A DNA stretch of 64,000 bases, taken from positions 124,001 through 188,000 of the IMG/VR virus record IMGVR_UViG_3300021197_001489. One strand, written 5' to 3'. Numbering within the stretch: the first letter of the stretch is position 1; each line of letters begins with the position of its first letter. This document shows positions 6,442 to 22,615 of this stretch, piece by piece. The translations under genes were made by a program, and so were the position numbers. The notes below the pieces were generated by a model that saw only the letters and a program-made list of their open reading frames with translations, was not told the DNA's origin and searched no databases.

Positions 6442-8199
6442 ATGATACAACTTAAAGATCTCACAGTTAAAAACTTCATGAGTGTGGGCAACGCCACACA
6501 AGCTATCAACTTTGATCGACAAGATCTCACATTGGTTCTAGGTGAAAACTTGGACCTTGGCGGCGATGGCAGCCGGAACGGCACTGGCAAGACCACTATC
6601 ATCAATGCACTAAGCTATGCACTGTACGGACAAGCACTGACAAATATCCGACGTGACAACTTGATTAACAAGACCAACAGCAAAGGCATGATGGTTAGTT
6701 TGGATTTCTGTGTTGGTGAACAGTGTTACAGGATTGAGCGCGGTCGTAAACCAAATGTGTTAAAGTTTTATATCAACGACAGTGAACAAGAATCAGACGA
6801 CAATGCACAAGGTGATAGTAGAGAAACACAAGGCGCTATTGAAAAACTGTTAAGCATGAGTCACACTATGTTTAAACACTTGGTAGCATTGAACACATAC
6901 ACCGAACCGTTTTTAAGTCTTAAACAAAACGATCAAAGAGAAATAATTGAACAACTGCTGGGTATAACCTTGCTCAGTGAACGTGCTGACAAGATCAAAG
7001 ATCTAAGCAAGCAAACCAAGGATTCAATCAAAGAAGAAGAAATGTCAATCCGTGCATTGCAAAATGCCAATGACAAAATAGGTGAACAAGTTGAAGCACT
7101 CAAGCGTAGACAAACACTGTGGCAAAACAAAAAAACAGAAGACACAGCCAAGTTCGAACGTGCTATTGAAGACTTAGCACATGTAGACATTGATGAGGAA
7201 CTTAGAGCACACACCGAACTTGCTGACTGGAATACGCTCAACAACGAACAGACACAATTACAAAAAGACATTGCGGCATTGCAAGCACAAGTTAGCAGAG
7301 CTGAACGTGATGTGAAAAAAGCAAACAAAGCTCTGGTAGGATGGCAAGACGGAGTTTGTCACAGTTGCAACCAAAGCATTGAACACTTGGATAGCCACAA
7401 ACAAGAAATTGAAAAGGCAGAGAAGGAACATGACGAAGCAAATAATTTCCTTGGAGAACTACAAGAAGGAATTGAAACGCTCTCAGCTGGAAAAACAGAT
7501 GTCCCAGCAAAACCACGCACTTTCTATGATAGCGCCAATGATGCACACAACCATCGTTCAAGCCTATCAGCACTGGAATTACAACTACAAAATAAACAAG
7601 ATGAAAGTGACCCTTACACCGATCAAATAGCAGACATGGAAACATCAGCAGTGCAAGAAGTTAGCTATGACAAACTCAACGACCTAACACGGTTGCACGA
7701 ACATCAAGACTTCTTGCTCAAACTGTTAACCAACAAAGACAGCTTTGTGCGCAAACGTATCATTGATCAAAATCTAAGTTACTTGAATTCAAGACTAACA
7801 CACTACTTGGACAGAATTGGATTGCCGCACACTGTGATATTCCAGAACGACCTAACTGTAGAGATTCAAGAGCTAGGCAGAGACTTAGACTTTGACAATC
7901 TATCAAGAGGTGAACGTAACAGACTTATACTGAGTATGAGTTGGGCGTTCCGTGATGTATGGGAGAGTTTGTATGGTGCAATCAACTTGCTGTTCATTGA
8001 TGAACTGGTTGATTCGGGTATGGATACATCAGGTGTAGAAGCAAGTTTAGCACTGCTTAAGAAGATGGCCCGTGAACGTGACAAGAGTATTTGGTTAGTA
8101 TCGCACAAGGACGAGCTTGCAGGGCGTGTAAACAACTTGCTTAAAGTTGTCAAAGAAAACGGCTTTACCAGCTATAACACAGATGTTGAAATACTATGA
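6442..8199 (+). CDS. gp46: Recombination ATPase subunit (Rad50/SbcC-like, T4 gp46)
   Basis: Walker A 'NGTGKTT', coiled coil with CHSC zinc hook, signature 'LSRGE', Walker B 'LLFIDE', H-loop 'VSH'. Confidence 0.95.
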   Translation: MIQLKDLTVKNFMSVGNATQAINFDRQDLTLVLGENLDLGGDGSRNGTGKTTIINALSYALYGQALTNIRRDNLINKTNSKGMMVSLDFCVGEQCYRIERGRKPNVLKFYINDSEQESDDNAQGDSRETQGAIEKLLSMSHTMFKHLVALNTYTEPFLSLKQNDQREIIEQLLGITLLSERADKIKDLSKQTKDSIKEEEMSIRALQNANDKIGEQVEALKRRQTLWQNKKTEDTAKFERAIEDLAHVDIDEELRAHTELADWNTLNNEQTQLQKDIAALQAQVSRAERDVKKANKALVGWQDGVCHSCNQSIEHLDSHKQEIEKAEKEHDEANNFLGELQEGIETLSAGKTDVPAKPRTFYDSANDAHNHRSSLSALELQLQNKQDESDPYTDQIADMETSAVQEVSYDKLNDLTRLHEHQDFLLKLLTNKDSFVRKRIIDQNLSYLNSRLTHYLDRIGLPHTVIFQNDLTVEIQELGRDLDFDNLSRGERNRLILSMSWAFRDVWESLYGAINLLFIDELVDSGMDTSGVEASLALLKKMARERDKSIWLVSHKDELAGRVNNLLKVVKENGFTSYNTDVEIL

Positions 8200-9227
8200 G
8201 CCTAGCACTGGATCACTGGCATATTGAAGTAAGCAGCGTTTGCACATTGCAGTGCCCGCGATGTACTCGTGCTGAAGTTCCAGAAACACTGCTTAACCGA
8301 AATCTCAATTTAAAATTTTTTCAAGAACAAATCGGTGAAGAATGGATAACAAAAATTCGCAAAATCACATTCTGTGGCGACGATGGTGATCCAATCTATG
8401 CCAAACAGTTTATCGAAATTGTTGAATGGATCAAAACGGTTAATCCTGATATTCAGCTCTTGATTATCACCAACGGCAGTTATAAAACTGCTGATTGGTG
8501 GCATCGTCTTGCTTGTGTACTCAATGAAAATGACGAGGTTCATTGGAGTTTAGACGGCTGGAATCAAGATAGCAACAGCAAATACAGAGTAAACTGCGAC
8601 TGGGCAAGTATTATGTTGGGCATAATAACTTTTCGTGTTTACAACAAAACCACATACACCGTGGTGGCAAGTATAGCATTTAGATTCAACGAAAACAACT
8701 TGCAAGATATAAAACAGATTGCAACAGATAACAATTTTGATTGTTGGCAACTTACAAAAAGTACAAAATTTGGTAGCAAATATCCAGTCGCTTATGGCAC
8801 AGACGACTTGCTAGAGCCTCTAGATACTGAATTGGTTGCGGCAGGACATCGTTTTGAAAGAACACAATACCCACTGAGCGACAAAACTCGACCAGGAAGC
8901 GATCTCAAAGAGTTGTTTTGGCAACGTGCGCAAAAATTAAATGCAAGCGACGAGTATCCTGCATTGTGCTATATCGGCAATAAAGGTGTATTTTTAAAAA
9001 GCACAGGAGAATTTTATCCGTGTTGCTGGACAGCATTACGCTATCCACATAATACAAAGTGGATCGAGCTTGCAGAAACCAAATTTAACCTGTACAATAG
9101 CACATTGGATCAGATACTAGATGATCCATGGTGGAGTACAGAATTTAGGCAGTTTGACAATCTAGAATGCAAAACAAAATGTATTAAAAGCAAACTTTTG
9201 GATCAGGCTCATGTCACAGAGTGGTAA
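8196..9227 (+). CDS. Radical SAM protein with C-terminal SPASM/twitch-like cysteines
   Basis: CxxxCxxC motif (CTLQCPRC), 'FCGDDGDP', and C-terminal 'CYIG...YPCCW...CKTKC'. Confidence 0.85.
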   Translation: MSLALDHWHIEVSSVCTLQCPRCTRAEVPETLLNRNLNLKFFQEQIGEEWITKIRKITFCGDDGDPIYAKQFIEIVEWIKTVNPDIQLLIITNGSYKTADWWHRLACVLNENDEVHWSLDGWNQDSNSKYRVNCDWASIMLGIITFRVYNKTTYTVVASIAFRFNENNLQDIKQIATDNNFDCWQLTKSTKFGSKYPVAYGTDDLLEPLDTELVAAGHRFERTQYPLSDKTRPGSDLKELFWQRAQKLNASDEYPALCYIGNKGVFLKSTGEFYPCCWTALRYPHNTKWIELAETKFNLYNSTLDQILDDPWWSTEFRQFDNLECKTKCIKSKLLDQAHVTEW

Positions 9228-9235
9228 CTATCACT

Positions 9236-9643
9236 ATGACATGGTACTACCAAGACAAAGAAGTAACTGATATTCCAGAAGGAGCAATTGGATTTGTGTA
9301 CATAATCACCAATCTTGTAGACAATCGCAAGTATATTGGCAAGAAATTGGCACAGTTTAAGCGCAGTAGAAAACCACTCAAAGGCAGAAAAAACAAACGC
9401 AGATACACAGTTACATCAGATTGGCAAGACTATTATGGCAGCAGCGATGCACTTACTGCGGATGTCGAACTGCTAGGCAAAGACAAGTTTAAACGCGAAA
9501 TAATGTTTTGGTGTGCAAGCAAAAGCGAACTTAGCTATGTTGAAGCAAGAGAACAATTTGCACACCGAGTATTAGAAAGCAAAGACTGGTATAACGGACA
9601 TATACAGGTTCGGGTACACCAAAAAGGCATACTAAAGGAATAA
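9236..9643 (+). CDS. Small GIY-YIG (Seg-like) endonuclease
   Basis: 'GFVYIITNLVDNRKYIGKK...YYGSS...E...WYNGHI'. ATG at 9236 gives 135 aa. Confidence 0.85.
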   Translation: MTWYYQDKEVTDIPEGAIGFVYIITNLVDNRKYIGKKLAQFKRSRKPLKGRKNKRRYTVTSDWQDYYGSSDALTADVELLGKDKFKREIMFWCASKSELSYVEAREQFAHRVLESKDWYNGHIQVRVHQKGILKE

Positions 9644-10187
9644 ATTTACAGGCAAATGATAACTAGCATAAACACTTATGCACAGGCACACTCAGAGCAA
9701 TGCTCAACTTTCTCTTTTAAATTTCCCAGCTAACATCGGAACACTGATTGGTCGGAATAGTTCGACTCACCTTGCAGTCTGCCAGCAGAAATGTTGTAGC
9801 CGTCAGAACTGGTGCGTTCCAAGGACATAGCTAACTATAGGCTAAAATGACATGGGCTCTGTGAAACAGATACAACCCATGCCCGAAGATACTTTGCTTG
9901 AAGGGGTATACAAGGGTTCCGTTGCGAGTCAAGGCTAGAGTAGGAGGTACAGCGTAACCGCCTCCGTACACAATTGTAATCTCTTTATTCAAGTGACTGA
10001 CACGACTCAGATGATGACTTTCAGTTTATGCTTGCCCTGTGTAAGGGCAAGTATGACCAAAAAATCTAGATGATAACGGAACGCTTCGCTTTGCTCGCGT
10101 GTTAACAGTATTGCTGAGCGTTAGCGATAGCAATAGATGTCTTTAGACATCTCGATAAGTTATTATTAAAACTTTGTGATTGTTATT
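9644..10187 (+). ncRNA. Candidate large structured ncRNA (unknown family)
   Basis: ~540 nt with no ORF of 60 aa or more in an otherwise gene-dense genome. It has about ten stems, a GAAA tetraloop, G-U pairs and long-range pairings (see findings). Strand is inferred from operon direction. Confidence 0.55.
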
Positions 10188-10511
10188 TTAGTATTGGTCT
10201 GGCCAATCTCTATATAGCAAATGTTGAATTGTTTCCATATCAACCATTTGGTTAAAGCCGTGATGCTTTTCTTCGATGTTGTCTGTGTCTGTAACCACAT
10301 GCTTCATGGCATCGTCAAGGTCTTGCATGTTTTTGAATTCCATGTCAATGCGCCACTCACCAACATCCATGCTCCTGAAGCCCAGTTTCATTCTGGTAAT
10401 ACGATAGCTTTGCATGGTAGGCAGTGCATCCAAGAACTTTTTCATATTGGTTACAAATTCATGTGGGTTAACGCCTTCTTTTACGTCACAGTAGATAGTG
10501 TAAACGTCCAT
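10188..10511 (-). CDS. Small alpha/beta-barrel-like protein (recalls DUF6614-type proteins)
   Basis: 'MDVYTIYCD...YRITRMKLGF...LYRDWPD'; family call from memory, unverified. Confidence 0.5.
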   Translation of the reverse strand: MDVYTIYCDVKEGVNPHEFVTNMKKFLDALPTMQSYRITRMKLGFRSMDVGEWRIDMEFKNMQDLDDAMKHVVTDTDNIEEKHHGFNQMVDMETIQHLLYRDWPDQY

Positions 10512-10963
10512 TATTTGACTCCTAAGTTGTCTGATGGAAATATTGTGAATCCATCTATTTGTTTCTTGTATTCATGTGCTTCGCCTAGTATTATCAACTC
10601 GTAACCCAACTCTTTGTATATTGCACATTCGGTTTTCATACTAGCAATGCCCAGTTTCAGTTTTGGATTGCGATAATCCCATGCAAACTGTAGAGCTTCA
10701 ACTGCTCGATTGTTTATCTTGTACATCATACTCCAGGCAACAAGGTCGTTGTTGTCGTAGTATGCTATTATGTCGTTGTGTTCTGCTACAAACTCTTCTT
10801 GATAGATTGGCCACACACTTTTGAATTTTTTATAATCAGCATACTGTTGATAGATTGTGAGCATTTGACTGGTTTTGGCATATCTTTCGTCTTGCAACAA
10901 TATCTTGTGATTGGTTTCTGCTGTGTAGTCAGTATCTGCGAGGTTTATGTAGCAGTAAGTCAT
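10511..10963 (-). CDS. GNAT-fold protein resembling the C-terminal domain of aminoacyl-tRNA-protein transferases (ATE/Bpt-like)
   Basis: 'IAYYDNNDLVAWS...QFAWDYRNPKLKLG...E...KELGYELIILGEAHEYK'. Confidence 0.55.
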   Translation of the reverse strand: MTYCYINLADTDYTAETNHKILLQDERYAKTSQMLTIYQQYADYKKFKSVWPIYQEEFVAEHNDIIAYYDNNDLVAWSMMYKINNRAVEALQFAWDYRNPKLKLGIASMKTECAIYKELGYELIILGEAHEYKKQIDGFTIFPSDNLGVK

Positions 10964-11460
10964 CTTGGGTCTTCTCTGTTTGTAAACAAACCTTGCAAAT
11001 ACTGTTCATCCCAGCCATTGTAAAAACCTTTTTTACCAAGCAGCTTGGCATGACTGTGTAATTTGCTGAGGCTTTGCACCAATGCTAGTGCATACTTACC
11101 CTGATTGAACTGTACCCCTTTGACCATTTCTACATTTTCTGGATGATCAGCCAGTGCCAACATGTCTATGGGTACCAGTGTTTCTTCGTTGATGCTGTCA
11201 ACTGCATCTTCAAAATCGTCTGGTGCATACCCTTGTGGATTGTATGCATAAATGTACACATCTTGGTCTCCCATGCCTTCTTGTGCAACATCTAGCATGT
11301 CAGCGTACAAATCTGTTCCGATACGCACAGTGTACTTGTTTTCCAGACGTGCTTTTCTGGCATAAGGGCATGGTGCCCAGTTGCCCAGTGCAGGATGCGG
11401 CACTTCTACAAAGTTGATCAACCAAGATTCAATGTCAGCTTTTACGTCATCTATTACCAA
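10960..11460 (-). CDS. DUF1415-like protein
   Basis: 'W...FVE......LGNWAPCPYARKA' and 'ADHP' resemble the family's CPFA and FHP motifs. Confidence 0.5.
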   Translation of the reverse strand: MVIDDVKADIESWLINFVEVPHPALGNWAPCPYARKARLENKYTVRIGTDLYADMLDVAQEGMGDQDVYIYAYNPQGYAPDDFEDAVDSINEETLVPIDMLALADHPENVEMVKGVQFNQGKYALALVQSLSKLHSHAKLLGKKGFYNGWDEQYLQGLFTNREDPR

Positions 11461-11630
11461 AACGGTTGTCCAGTCTTTTTTGCAGTCTCAAGGTTCTCTT
11501 TGATTAACTTGCCCATTGATTCGCGTTCACTTACGCTCATTTGTACAATCTCACTGTAAGTCACACCACCTCGCATAAACCAGCAAATCTTGAGCATGTC
11601 TTCTTTGAGGCCCTTAACTTCTTTGTCCAT
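11454..11630 (-). CDS. Small baseplate/tail assembly chaperone-like ORF (gp51- or gpT-like); possibly made mainly as a frameshift extension
   Basis: 'ICWFMRGGVTYSEIVQMSVSERE'. The ATG at 11630 has a weak RBS, and the frame stays open upstream across the gp26-like stop. Confidence 0.6.
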   Translation of the reverse strand: MDKEVKGLKEDMLKICWFMRGGVTYSEIVQMSVSERESMGKLIKENLETAKKTGQPFW

Positions 11631-11677: not shown

Positions 11678-12514
11678 TTATACGAAAAAATTTGCAACAT
11701 TCATTGTGAATGGTGTGTCGTATTCGTGTTTGCAATCTGCACAAGTAATATGCAGCGGTTCTACTGCGCCAGTTTGCTTGATGTCTTCAATTTTCTTGCG
11801 AATCTTATCAAATGCTTTGCTTTCGCAGTTGCGAATGTATTCTTCAATGTGGTCTTTGTCCACAACAAGGTCATCACCAGCTTTGATCATGCTAATGCTT
11901 TGGGAAATGGCACTCAGTGTTAAATGACTGATATTTGTGAATGCTTGTTGTAACAGTTCTAGTTTTTCAGATTCAGGAATTTCCGCGGTTGGCAGCGTCT
12001 CTAACATTTTTTGGTCTTGAAACTGTGCAGAGTTGTTTTCGTTTTGTTCTTTGTAGGTAAGTGGGCGAAAGTGTATTTCGACATCTCCTGCAACAACTGG
12101 CTGTGAAAAGTCTGGTGACTTTATCCGTTCCATAATATCTCTTAGATCAATAGCAAAGTTGTTTTCTTCTTCACATTTTGGACACTTGCTGGTAAATTCC
12201 ATTTCATGCCCATAACTGGCTATTCTCATAGCAATCAACAGTGTGTCAAGATCCAATGTACTGGTCTGCCAAGCGTCTTTGTATGCAGGAACACAGCTTT
12301 CAATAACACTGGCAATGGCACTGCCGTTAAACAGCGCATCAGCAGTTCTATATGTAATCTCATCCAGTGCTGTCATTGGGTAGATTGGCAATTCGCCGTT
12401 TTCTGGCATTGTCAACTGTGACTCGTCATTGAAGGCGCCGCCACTGGGTAACTTGATATAGATGCTGGGTTGCCTGAAATGTTTTGCCAGCGGATTTGGG
12501 TTAGTGTTTGACAT
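11678..12514 (-). CDS. gp26: Baseplate hub assembly protein (T4 gp26-like)
   Basis: 'NPLAKHFRQPSIYIKLPSGG...MTALDE', two CxxC pairs (CPKC, CADC); likely ATG at 12514. Confidence 0.8.
   Translation of the reverse strand: MSNTNPNPLAKHFRQPSIYIKLPSGGAFNDESQLTMPENGELPIYPMTALDEITYRTADALFNGSAIASVIESCVPAYKDAWQTSTLDLDTLLIAMRIASYGHEMEFTSKCPKCEEENNFAIDLRDIMERIKSPDFSQPVVAGDVEIHFRPLTYKEQNENNSAQFQDQKMLETLPTAEIPESEKLELLQQAFTNISHLTLSAISQSISMIKAGDDLVVDKDHIEEYIRNCESKAFDKIRKKIEDIKQTGAVEPLHITCADCKHEYDTPFTMNVANFFV
11684..11693 (-). promoter_or_regulatory. Putative -1 programmed frameshift site (A AAT TTT TTC)
   Basis: Two overlapping X XXY YYZ heptamers in the correct phase, ending one codon before the gp26-like stop; the -1 frame is open for 76 more codons. 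Confidence 0.6.
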
Positions 12515-12580
12515 GTTTTTTCCTACCATAAATATATGTATAACGTACTTATACGACGTAAAAATGGGCAAAAATTAAAT

Positions 12581-21840: not shown

Positions 21841-21940
21841 CTAAATAACTGTAACATAACGCAATAATGCGTTTTATGCGGAATACCATCCGCGTAGTGG
21901 GCTAGAACCCACATCGGACTTCTATAAAGGAGAAAACAAC
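21841..21940 (+). promoter_or_regulatory. Late promoter plus structured leader (two hairpins and an H-type pseudoknot)
   Basis: CTAAATA at 21841-21847. Stems 21858-63/21868-73, 21875-82/21889-96 and 21897-901/21908-12; loop TAGAA pairs with TTCTA at 21920-24; AAGGAG follows. Confidence 0.6.
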
Positions 21941-22615
21941 ATGGGACGTCCTCTCAAAATTAAAAAATCAGCAACCACTGACATTGGTTTCAACAATCCA
22001 GGTGATGATTCATCACCAAGAGTACCAGCTGGCGAACTATACTTTGGTCAAGTTGGCGGAGACACAGCTTTAGCTAACGGCGACAATCCAGTCACATCAT
22101 GCCGTGTCAAAATTGGCTCAGTGGCAGAAGCTGAAGGTTATATCATCCGTCAAAAAGGTGCAACCAAGTACCTAGTTGCTGATGCAACTGGTGTTACAGC
22201 CGGTTCGTTTGTTACTAGTAACACATATATTATTACTTCACTTGGCAACACTGATTTCACTCTTGTTGGCGGTCCAGCAAATGCAGCAGTTGGCACAACA
22301 TTCGTAGCTACCGGCGCAGGCTCAGGCTCAGGCACAGTGGATACAATTGGTACATGTGTACTGGCTAACAAGGCTGATGCTTCTTTAGCAGCAGATGAAA
22401 TGACAATAACTTACTCAGATGTTGGATCAGGTCAAGTTCGCATCAAGCGCATGACTAACAAATATGCAATTAACTTTTCTGATGCTAGAGTTGTAGTTAA
22501 CTACTTTAACATCATTGATGATACAGTTGAGAAGTCAGGTGCTGATAAAGACACAATGACAGGTGGTGTATCAACTATTGACGTAGTACAGGTTGAGAAT
22601 CCAATCTACGGTTAA
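21941..22615 (+). CDS. Virion structural protein (post-capsid, decoration-like)
   Basis: Strong RBS and own terminator; Thr/Gly/Ala-rich. Confidence 0.55.
   Translation: MGRPLKIKKSATTDIGFNNPGDDSSPRVPAGELYFGQVGGDTALANGDNPVTSCRVKIGSVAEAEGYIIRQKGATKYLVADATGVTAGSFVTSNTYIITSLGNTDFTLVGGPANAAVGTTFVATGAGSGSGTVDTIGTCVLANKADASLAADEMTITYSDVGSGQVRIKRMTNKYAINFSDARVVVNYFNIIDDTVEKSGADKDTMTGGVSTIDVVQVENPIYG

Follow-up and report, generated by a model that had tools for sequence, protein, structure and literature searches.

We analysed a stretch of 64,000 nucleotides (nt), hereafter the window, from IMG/VR virus record IMGVR_UViG_3300021197_001489. The window corresponds to C1:124001-188000, where C1 is the 316,012-bp source record (about 91% complete), which derives from a marine jumbo phage of the T4 superfamily. 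Our subject is the interval 10188-11460 of the window, which contains exactly three open reading frames (ORFs), all on the minus strand. Gene A (10960..11460, TTG start) encodes 166 amino acids predicted to adopt a Cys-ligated heme 'sandwich' fold of the DUF6875/cytochrome P422, DUF1415 and AglA-like type; gene B (10511..10963, ATG start) encodes a stand-alone, single GNAT of 150 amino acids that resembles ATE_C and lacks ATE_N; and gene C (10188..10511, ATG start) encodes a 107-aa DUF6614 protein (PF20319). The sequence ATGA at 10960-10963 contributes to both the A stop and the B start, and TAATG at 10509-10513 likewise joins the B stop to the C start, with GGAG 9 nt upstream. An initial annotation, made from the DNA letters and their translations, had reported three tightly coupled ORFs with overlapping stops and starts, and both the ORF list and our reading of the junctions agree with it exactly. 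We conclude that the three genes constitute one operon with translational coupling. Word searches returned 46 homologues of B, 1745 of A and 426 of C, and IMG/VR holds 509 relatives of B and 363 of A; these many homologues indicate that all three are real genes rather than chance ORFs.

We surveyed the co-occurrence of these genes with custom hidden Markov models in 80 B-anchored IMG/VR loci, drawn from the 509 B relatives, and in 80 A-anchored loci, drawn from the 363 A relatives. We found A in 76 of the 80 B-anchored loci, and the four exceptions end at a contig edge just upstream of B. Among the B-anchored loci with full flanks, A was present in 58/58, C in 44/58 and a further partner gene, D (described below), in 34/58. 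The reciprocal census gave the same picture: B was found in all 80 A-anchored loci, and both B and C in all 52 of those with full flanks. The initial annotation had made its grouping depend on co-occurrence of the genes elsewhere, and they do co-occur strongly. Every B-homologue contig that we examined belongs to a large phage and carries an A homologue directly upstream of B. We detected no gene fusions among A-D in the 160 viral loci, and a predicted complex of A with B scored 0.01, which is evidence neither way.

The surroundings of the pair vary. In syntenic jumbo-phage contigs the order is baseplate hub gene, small ORF, A, B, C; one variant has an additional 375-aa gene that separates A from B, and in another a B-like gene is encoded by the other strand. 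The contexts of C homologues include the order B-C-A, and the order C-D-A, in which B is opposite and five radical SAM genes adjoin. Among the 80 B-anchored loci, the hub gene recurs as a neighbour in 22, a Rad50-like gene in 21, the portal gene in 20, each of two radical SAM families in 14, and the small subunit of ribonucleotide reductase (RNR) and a gene resembling pyridoxal phosphate (PLP) enzymes in 6 apiece. In other phages the module lies beside RNR, beside phosphoribosyl pyrophosphate (PRPP) synthase with MazG, or beside radical SAM clusters; only in the present lineage does it follow the hub gene. The strict coupling of A and B thus persists across varying order, strand and neighbourhood, and it is the strongest result of this analysis.

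In the window, the gene upstream of the module is a gp26-like baseplate hub gene (11678..12571, minus strand, 297 aa) that matches T4_baseplate PF12322 at 2e-19 and phrog_150, 'baseplate hub'. The description of the three genes as appended to a baseplate chaperone operon is therefore supported in part, to the extent that a hub gene lies upstream. Between the hub gene and A is a small minus-strand ORF, whose longest reading extends to 11744. The most likely gene is the 58-aa ORF that starts at ATG (11454..11630), because this length fits the 58-62-aa orthologues that occupy the same position in relatives L010-L012. Its TAA (11454-11456) is overlapped by the TTG of A (11460) in the sequence TTGGTAA, and library scans gave no family match for this ORF.

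The product of gene B matches a single Pfam family, ATE_C, with an E-value of 1e-3 and 20.1 bits, short of the cut-off score of 25; in NCBIfam it matches the arginyltransferase equivalog (7.7e-5), of whose 241 model positions it covers 88-203. When 31 members of the B family were scanned singly, 30 matched ATE_C at E<0.1 (best 1.9e-7), and the 228-aa B-like gene of the closest relative, L010, scored 26.4 bits, above the cut-off. An hhalign comparison of the B family with Bpt gave E 1.2e-3 and a probability of 19.7%, a weak result obtained with just five Bpt sequences. In that comparison the conserved B block QFAWDY..PKL.LG ... EC..Y ... LG ... YK..I.GF aligns weakly with the ATE_C motifs VYSFY.PD..SLG ... 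YLGY ... MGYK of Bpt. ATE1 and Bpt, however, comprise 240-500 amino acids and carry ATE_N in addition to ATE_C, whereas B, of about 150 amino acids, has neither ATE_N nor any other N-terminal extension, starts at approximately Bpt residue 88, scores under or at the cut-off, and is always paired with A, a protein unrelated to ATE_N. The 46 B homologues from the word search are all metagenomic. Neither blastn nor tblastn found a match to B in named phages, and profile searches of B against PDB sequences gave nothing significant.

The predicted structure of B (predicted local distance difference test, pLDDT, of 92) has a GNAT fold. Ranked by Z, its top six matches are MprF lobes (14.3-16.0), and FemX (14.1) and Sba18 (13.1) also score highly. 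Acyl-CoA enzymes are close behind (VipF 14.2, NMT 13.9), so the fold of B is closer to the tRNA-dependent members than to acetyltransferases by only a small margin. ATE1 chains are also among the Foldseek matches and rank below MprF, FemX and Sba18. The C-terminal lobe of MprF/aaPGS, FemX and Sba18/Sbb17 all belong to aminoacyl-tRNA-dependent transferases, which act on lipids, peptidoglycan precursors and streptothrisamine, respectively. Unlike the single-lobed B, these proteins are tandem GNATs, and they share with it 9-11% identity and no family-level sequence match. Taken together, the family matches and the model indicate that B is a single-lobe member of the tRNA-dependent transferase class, with aminoacyl-tRNA as its probable donor. 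This supports the earlier assignment of B as a GNAT like those of ATE and Bpt, and the GNAT motif quoted with that assignment is indeed present.

Direct searches with A yielded phrog_28122 (7e-16) and a weak match to DUF6875 over residues 9-49, which in Pfam reached 16.2 bits against a cut-off of 24.5 and covered model positions 3-44 of 178. Within the A family, 23 of 24 members matched DUF6875 weakly (best 6.9e-5) and 2 of 24 matched DUF1415, and the A model matched an ESM Atlas cluster named 'DUF1415 domain-containing protein', which carries DUF6875 and DUF1415 labels, with a template modelling (TM) score of 0.84. The original label 'DUF1415-like' was therefore largely sound. A preprint describes DUF6875 proteins as 'cytochrome P422', thiolate-ligated heme b enzymes with a new sandwich fold and the heme-binding motif RxGxVCP, which act on tryptophan with ferredoxin and ferredoxin reductase; its members Mc170 and ThnD carry out tryptophan hydroxylation or C-S bond formation. 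We compared the A family by hhalign with eleven true DUF6875 genes from cyanobacteria and obtained an alignment of 40 columns (probability 94.8%, E 5e-8) in which Cys31 of A falls on the heme cysteine; the alignment is confined to the N-terminal region, and the remainder is unaligned. The Cys-Pro of RxGxVCP is kept and aligned, the Arg is replaced by Asn, Gly or Ser, and the spacing is one residue shorter. By contrast, A departs from the tryptophan motifs SBR1-3 when compared by eye with the cyanobacterial P422 consensus: the SBR1 Arg is Gln129, and both the SBR2 Lys and the SBR3 MxGxF are lost.

Across 110 unique viral A sequences, with identities down to 27%, the invariant residues are Cys31, Ala34, Asp105, His106, Gly121 and Tyr147. 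The A model places a four-stranded sheet between helices, five in number, and has the Cys where helix 2 begins, as expected for this fold group and in agreement with the four strands and approximately seven helices published for cytochrome P422. The latter proteins differ from A in their length (about 225 versus 166 aa); A also lacks the Arg of RxGxVCP and has no neighbours for tryptophan metabolism. Foldseek returned no PDB match to the A model at E<=0.001, and profile searches of both A and true DUF6875 against PDB sequences gave nothing significant, with PDB copies evidently without the P422 structure 9X39. The single standout PDB match was AglA (9ub3). From the profile alignment and the model, A is a distant member of the DUF6875 (P422)/DUF1415 fold group that keeps the heme-ligating Cys, from which we infer that it binds heme. 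We also considered A as a split-off ATE_N, given the tetrapeptide PCPY common to Bpt and A; hhalign aligned just 7 columns with a probability of 3%, and we rejected this idea.

Two lone relatives of A were encountered outside the module. The sole A-like gene in a named cultured phage is phage1322_66 of Puniceispirillum phage HMO-2011 (L001:3986-4513, 29% identity), which is without B, C or D and lies near a gene annotated as a methanesulfonate monooxygenase subunit. The chromosome of Oscillatoria sp. PCC 10802 carries a lone A homologue of 169 aa (L023:4995-5833; 49% identity), opposite which a B remnant of 45 aa is encoded; the insertion adjoins panB, the 5' end of which is duplicated. This locus looks like the scar of a gene transfer from a phage to a filamentous cyanobacterium.

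The third gene, C, which the initial annotation had described as a small barrel protein, is a clear member of DUF6614: it matches PF20319 at 1.3e-20 (74 bits against a cut-off of 25) over positions 1-107 of 116, and all 120 C homologues listed, of 426, carry this domain. Its alignment contains a set of invariant charged residues (R37, R40, K42, R46, E52, H83, H97, R101, D102 and D105), and its ESM Atlas clusters are nearly all viral. A profile search of C against PDB sequences found no relative, and blastn and tblastn found no match in named phages. Among 401 sampled Pseudomonadota, seven carry DUF6614, located between an M32 carboxypeptidase gene and gyrA; in those bacteria Bpt lies elsewhere and DUF1415 is absent, and the context gave no functional lead. 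We also considered DUF6614 as an anti-Druantia factor, as Druad1 is labelled 'DUF6614' in a preprint; Druad1, however, has 44 aa, less than half of the domain, and its authors report no homologues, so we rejected this candidate.

In many loci a gene of 365-412 aa, D, adjoins or lies inside the module. A D profile built from 8 sequences matched StrB1, AGAT, HsvA and SxtG at 3e-35 to 2e-30, including 1bwd (3e-35) and 1jdw (2e-32), in two stretches that span both halves of the protein. The C-terminal catalytic Cys block of these enzymes, GG.HC.T.D..R.G, is kept in the D alignment. Given this full-length similarity and the catalytic block, we assign D as an L-arginine:X amidinotransferase. Unlike the module-linked D of other loci, D in the present phage is found outside the module and outside the window (L019-L021), as three dispersed paralogues of the AGAT/StrB1 type at C1:83449-84471 (plus strand), C1:232052-233074 (minus strand) and C1:271828-272757 (plus strand). 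About 4 kb separates the first of these from a series of five radical SAM genes (88.5-96.7 kb), and the record as a whole has at least nine radical SAM matches.

The closest precedent for the A-B pair comes from the biosynthesis of argolaphos in Streptomyces monomycini. There, AglC, an Arg-tRNA-dependent ligase, works with ArgRS, tRNA and arginine to form AMPn-Arg, which is then hydroxylated by AglA, a guanidine N-hydroxylase of the YqcI/YcgG family whose heme is ligated by Cys44 (PDB 9ub3). The tRNA-dependent ligases of the argolaphos cluster are GNATs. In addition, arginine or guanidine chemistry is suggested by three of the four partners studied here: B is an ATE-like transferase, A shares its fold with an N-hydroxylase that acts on an arginine adduct, and D is an arginine amidinotransferase. 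Because of these arginine-type partners and the argolaphos precedent for the core pair, we favour the hypothesis that the module is a portable cassette for small-molecule tailoring, in which B aminoacylates an amine from charged tRNA, A oxygenates, and C and D add steps. We consider this plausible, at a little under an even chance. The A-B-C set resembles a miniature antibiotic-type biosynthetic pathway more than a system for tagging proteins for degradation.

According to this hypothesis, B would transfer an amino acid from charged tRNA to the free amine of a small acceptor. Arginine is our best guess for the amino acid, and the tRNA could be that of the host or the phage's own tRNA-Arg: the phage has four tRNA genes at C1:49409-67361, namely Thr(UGU), Arg(UCU), Trp(CCA) and a tRNA-Ser whose anticodon, ACU, is unusual. 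The tRNA-Arg(UCU) is compatible with our reading, though such tRNAs are common in phages. A would bind heme b and oxygenate either the substrate or the product of B; by analogy to AglA, this reaction might be the N-hydroxylation of a guanidine or amine. Its electrons would come from the host ferredoxin system, since we found no Fer2 domain or ferredoxin encoded in the 316-kb record. C would supply a frequent third step, and D an optional fourth, in this phage from outside the module and from three copies. The order of these steps is itself part of the proposal, and the product would be an oxygenated, guanidino-type aminoacyl compound, presumably made during infection. The parallel with argolaphos has its limits. 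The link between A and AglA is structural and moderate: A has no sequence-level similarity to the YqcI/YcgG family to which AglA belongs, and YqcI_YcgG had no match in the phage record. AglC is likened to B by its described activity. Furthermore, the bacterial cluster for argolaphos is a large phosphonate cluster that brings its own reductase. The phage cassette, in contrast, spans 1.3 kb, contains no phosphonate gene or redox partner, and includes a DUF6614 partner that is not reported for argolaphos.

The initial annotation had described a phage-encoded module of unknown purpose, which is correct as far as it goes, and had placed it in protein or envelope modification with reference to the N-degron pathway. 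In such a scheme B, like Bpt or ATE1, would add Leu or Arg to the N-termini of host or phage proteins, A could prepare the acceptor by N-terminal oxidation, as happens in the Cys/Arg branch of eukaryotes, or as a Cys-His-Asp amidase, and C could serve as an adaptor. The hierarchical N-degron pathway does place a preparatory enzyme before the transferase, and the invariant Cys31, Asp105 and His106 would suit A to that role; moreover, the sequence-family matches of B are limited to ATE_C and the arginyltransferase model, and ATE1 chains occur among its structural matches. Even so, B is without ATE_N and begins only where residue 88 or so of Bpt would be, ATE1 ranks structurally under MprF, FemX and Sba18, and C matched neither ClpS nor adaptor families in the Pfam scan. 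In bacteria, Bpt genes show no linkage to either DUF6614 or DUF1415, the family of D acts on small amines, and the neighbours of the module (RNR, PRPP synthase, radical SAM and PLP enzymes) are metabolic. N-terminal tagging is therefore possible but, in our judgement, unlikely, and we favour it less than small-molecule tailoring because the partner of B is an obligate oxygenase-fold protein, D, a frequent fourth partner, is a small-molecule arginine amidinotransferase, and the pairing of AglC with AglA in a natural-product pathway is the closest known. The envelope version of the proposal, in which B would act like an MprF/aaPGS lobe on phosphatidylglycerol or another amine or hydroxyl of the envelope and thereby alter the infected cell's surface charge, has the fold ranking as its sole argument and is very improbable. 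In MprF the synthase domain is a tandem GNAT anchored to a membrane flippase; B, by comparison, is soluble, has just one lobe and 150 aa, and shows no sequence match to DUF2156. Such a function also leaves no role for an oxygenase-fold partner or an amidinotransferase.

Nucleic acid could also be the acceptor. Cassettes that are mobile and vary in their accessory enzymes typify DNA hypermodification, and in several phages the module has nucleotide-metabolism genes and radical SAM clusters nearby. B would then place an amino acid on a base of DNA or RNA, with A, C and D tailoring it through oxidation or amidination, and the modification would protect the phage DNA against nucleases of the host. 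Mom of phage Mu, a GNAT that modifies DNA adenine with Gly taken from Gly-tRNA, provides a precedent for a phage-encoded GNAT that uses charged tRNA, as proposed for B, and does so on DNA (PMC13219725). Mom, however, works alone, whereas B always occurs with A; no search detected similarity between B and Mom, and no Mom structure appears in the top 50 Foldseek rows. The 316-kb record contains no thymidylate-synthase-like hydroxymethylase, known A and D relatives have free amino acids or small amines as their substrates, and in this lineage the module resides in a late, structural gene block. We thus regard hypermodification as quite unlikely. That same location might instead indicate an accessory role in virion assembly, the genes of the hub operon building or decorating the baseplate: A, B and C share their strand with the gp26-like gene and the 58-aa ORF, the frames overlap, and the position is conserved in the closest lineage. 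This idea is hardly credible, as the module is elsewhere far from baseplate genes, with a hub gene nearby in just 22 of 80 B-anchored loci, and the proteins have enzyme folds with invariant polar residues.

The enzyme types involved are each known, and their pairing has a bacterial precedent; the combination is undescribed in viruses. The P422 paper mentions no phage, viral member or tRNA context, and our literature search found no description of a viral branch of these heme-fold proteins or of a phage ATE_C-like gene, and only Mom as a phage arginyltransferase-like or tRNA-dependent module. A more specific and wider claim, which we consider doubtful, is that large aquatic phages carry a self-contained, horizontally mobile pathway in which diverted host aminoacyl-tRNA (probably Arg-tRNA) and a new viral branch of Cys-heme N-oxygenases yield an N-hydroxyguanidine-type compound in infected cells, be it a free antimetabolite or signal, or a hydroxylated aminoacyl mark on DNA or protein. 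If true, this would be the first tRNA- and heme-dependent 'natural product' pathway assigned to viruses and would give DUF6614 its first biochemical context. Should the tailoring hypothesis itself be right, phages would tap the charged-tRNA pool for non-translation chemistry more widely than Mom alone suggests, and the newly recognised non-P450 thiolate-heme enzymes would include many viral members, forming a branch that acts on a different substrate. The DUF1415-like and DUF6614 domains would thereby gain a testable context. The cassette is common, given the number of viral A and B relatives, and it is an easy target for heterologous expression because it spans 1.3 kb and needs common cell components only.

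Downstream of C is an ORF-free stretch of about 540 nt (9644..10187) that extends from the end of C to a convergent segE-like GIY-YIG gene and is likely the 3' end of the operon. It contains two perfect 8-bp hairpins, near 10133-10150 and near 10030-10050, and has no Rfam match; no terminator consensus was called, and promoter and terminator scan counts did not exceed those of shuffled sequence. Within it, contig depth over the piece 9830-9880 is raised several-fold in each of the four runs examined, which indicates a shared or repeated element or a strain bubble. Contigs from two marine metatranscriptomes of one study span C, B and part of A of related strains, a weak hint of expression, as DNA carry-over is possible.

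Several further features were noted around the module and in the genome. On the plus strand, 8196-9643 holds a radical SAM/SPASM gene (343 aa) that overlaps the segE-like GIY-YIG homing endonuclease gene (140 aa; PF19835 at 7.7e-35), and this pair adjoins the module in relatives L010-L012 as well. The PHROGs label of the segE-like family, 'NAD synthetase', looks like a mis-annotation. Two contexts that otherwise differ (L007:7568-8464 and L012:9400-10425) share, immediately downstream of the module, a family of 298 and 341 aa (26% identity, E 7e-28), which may represent another accessory partner. The portal protein of the phage is closest, among named phages, to that of Sinorhizobium phage Phosso (56%), with Atu_ph07 and PA5oct at about 49%, and near-identical DNA of the region is present in seawater and marine metagenomes from more than 10 studies. 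At 21857-21943 on the plus strand of the window, we found a full-length match to the Rfam 'freshwater-2 RNA' motif (68.5 bits; gathering score 49.9), in a phage whose near-identical DNA is marine.

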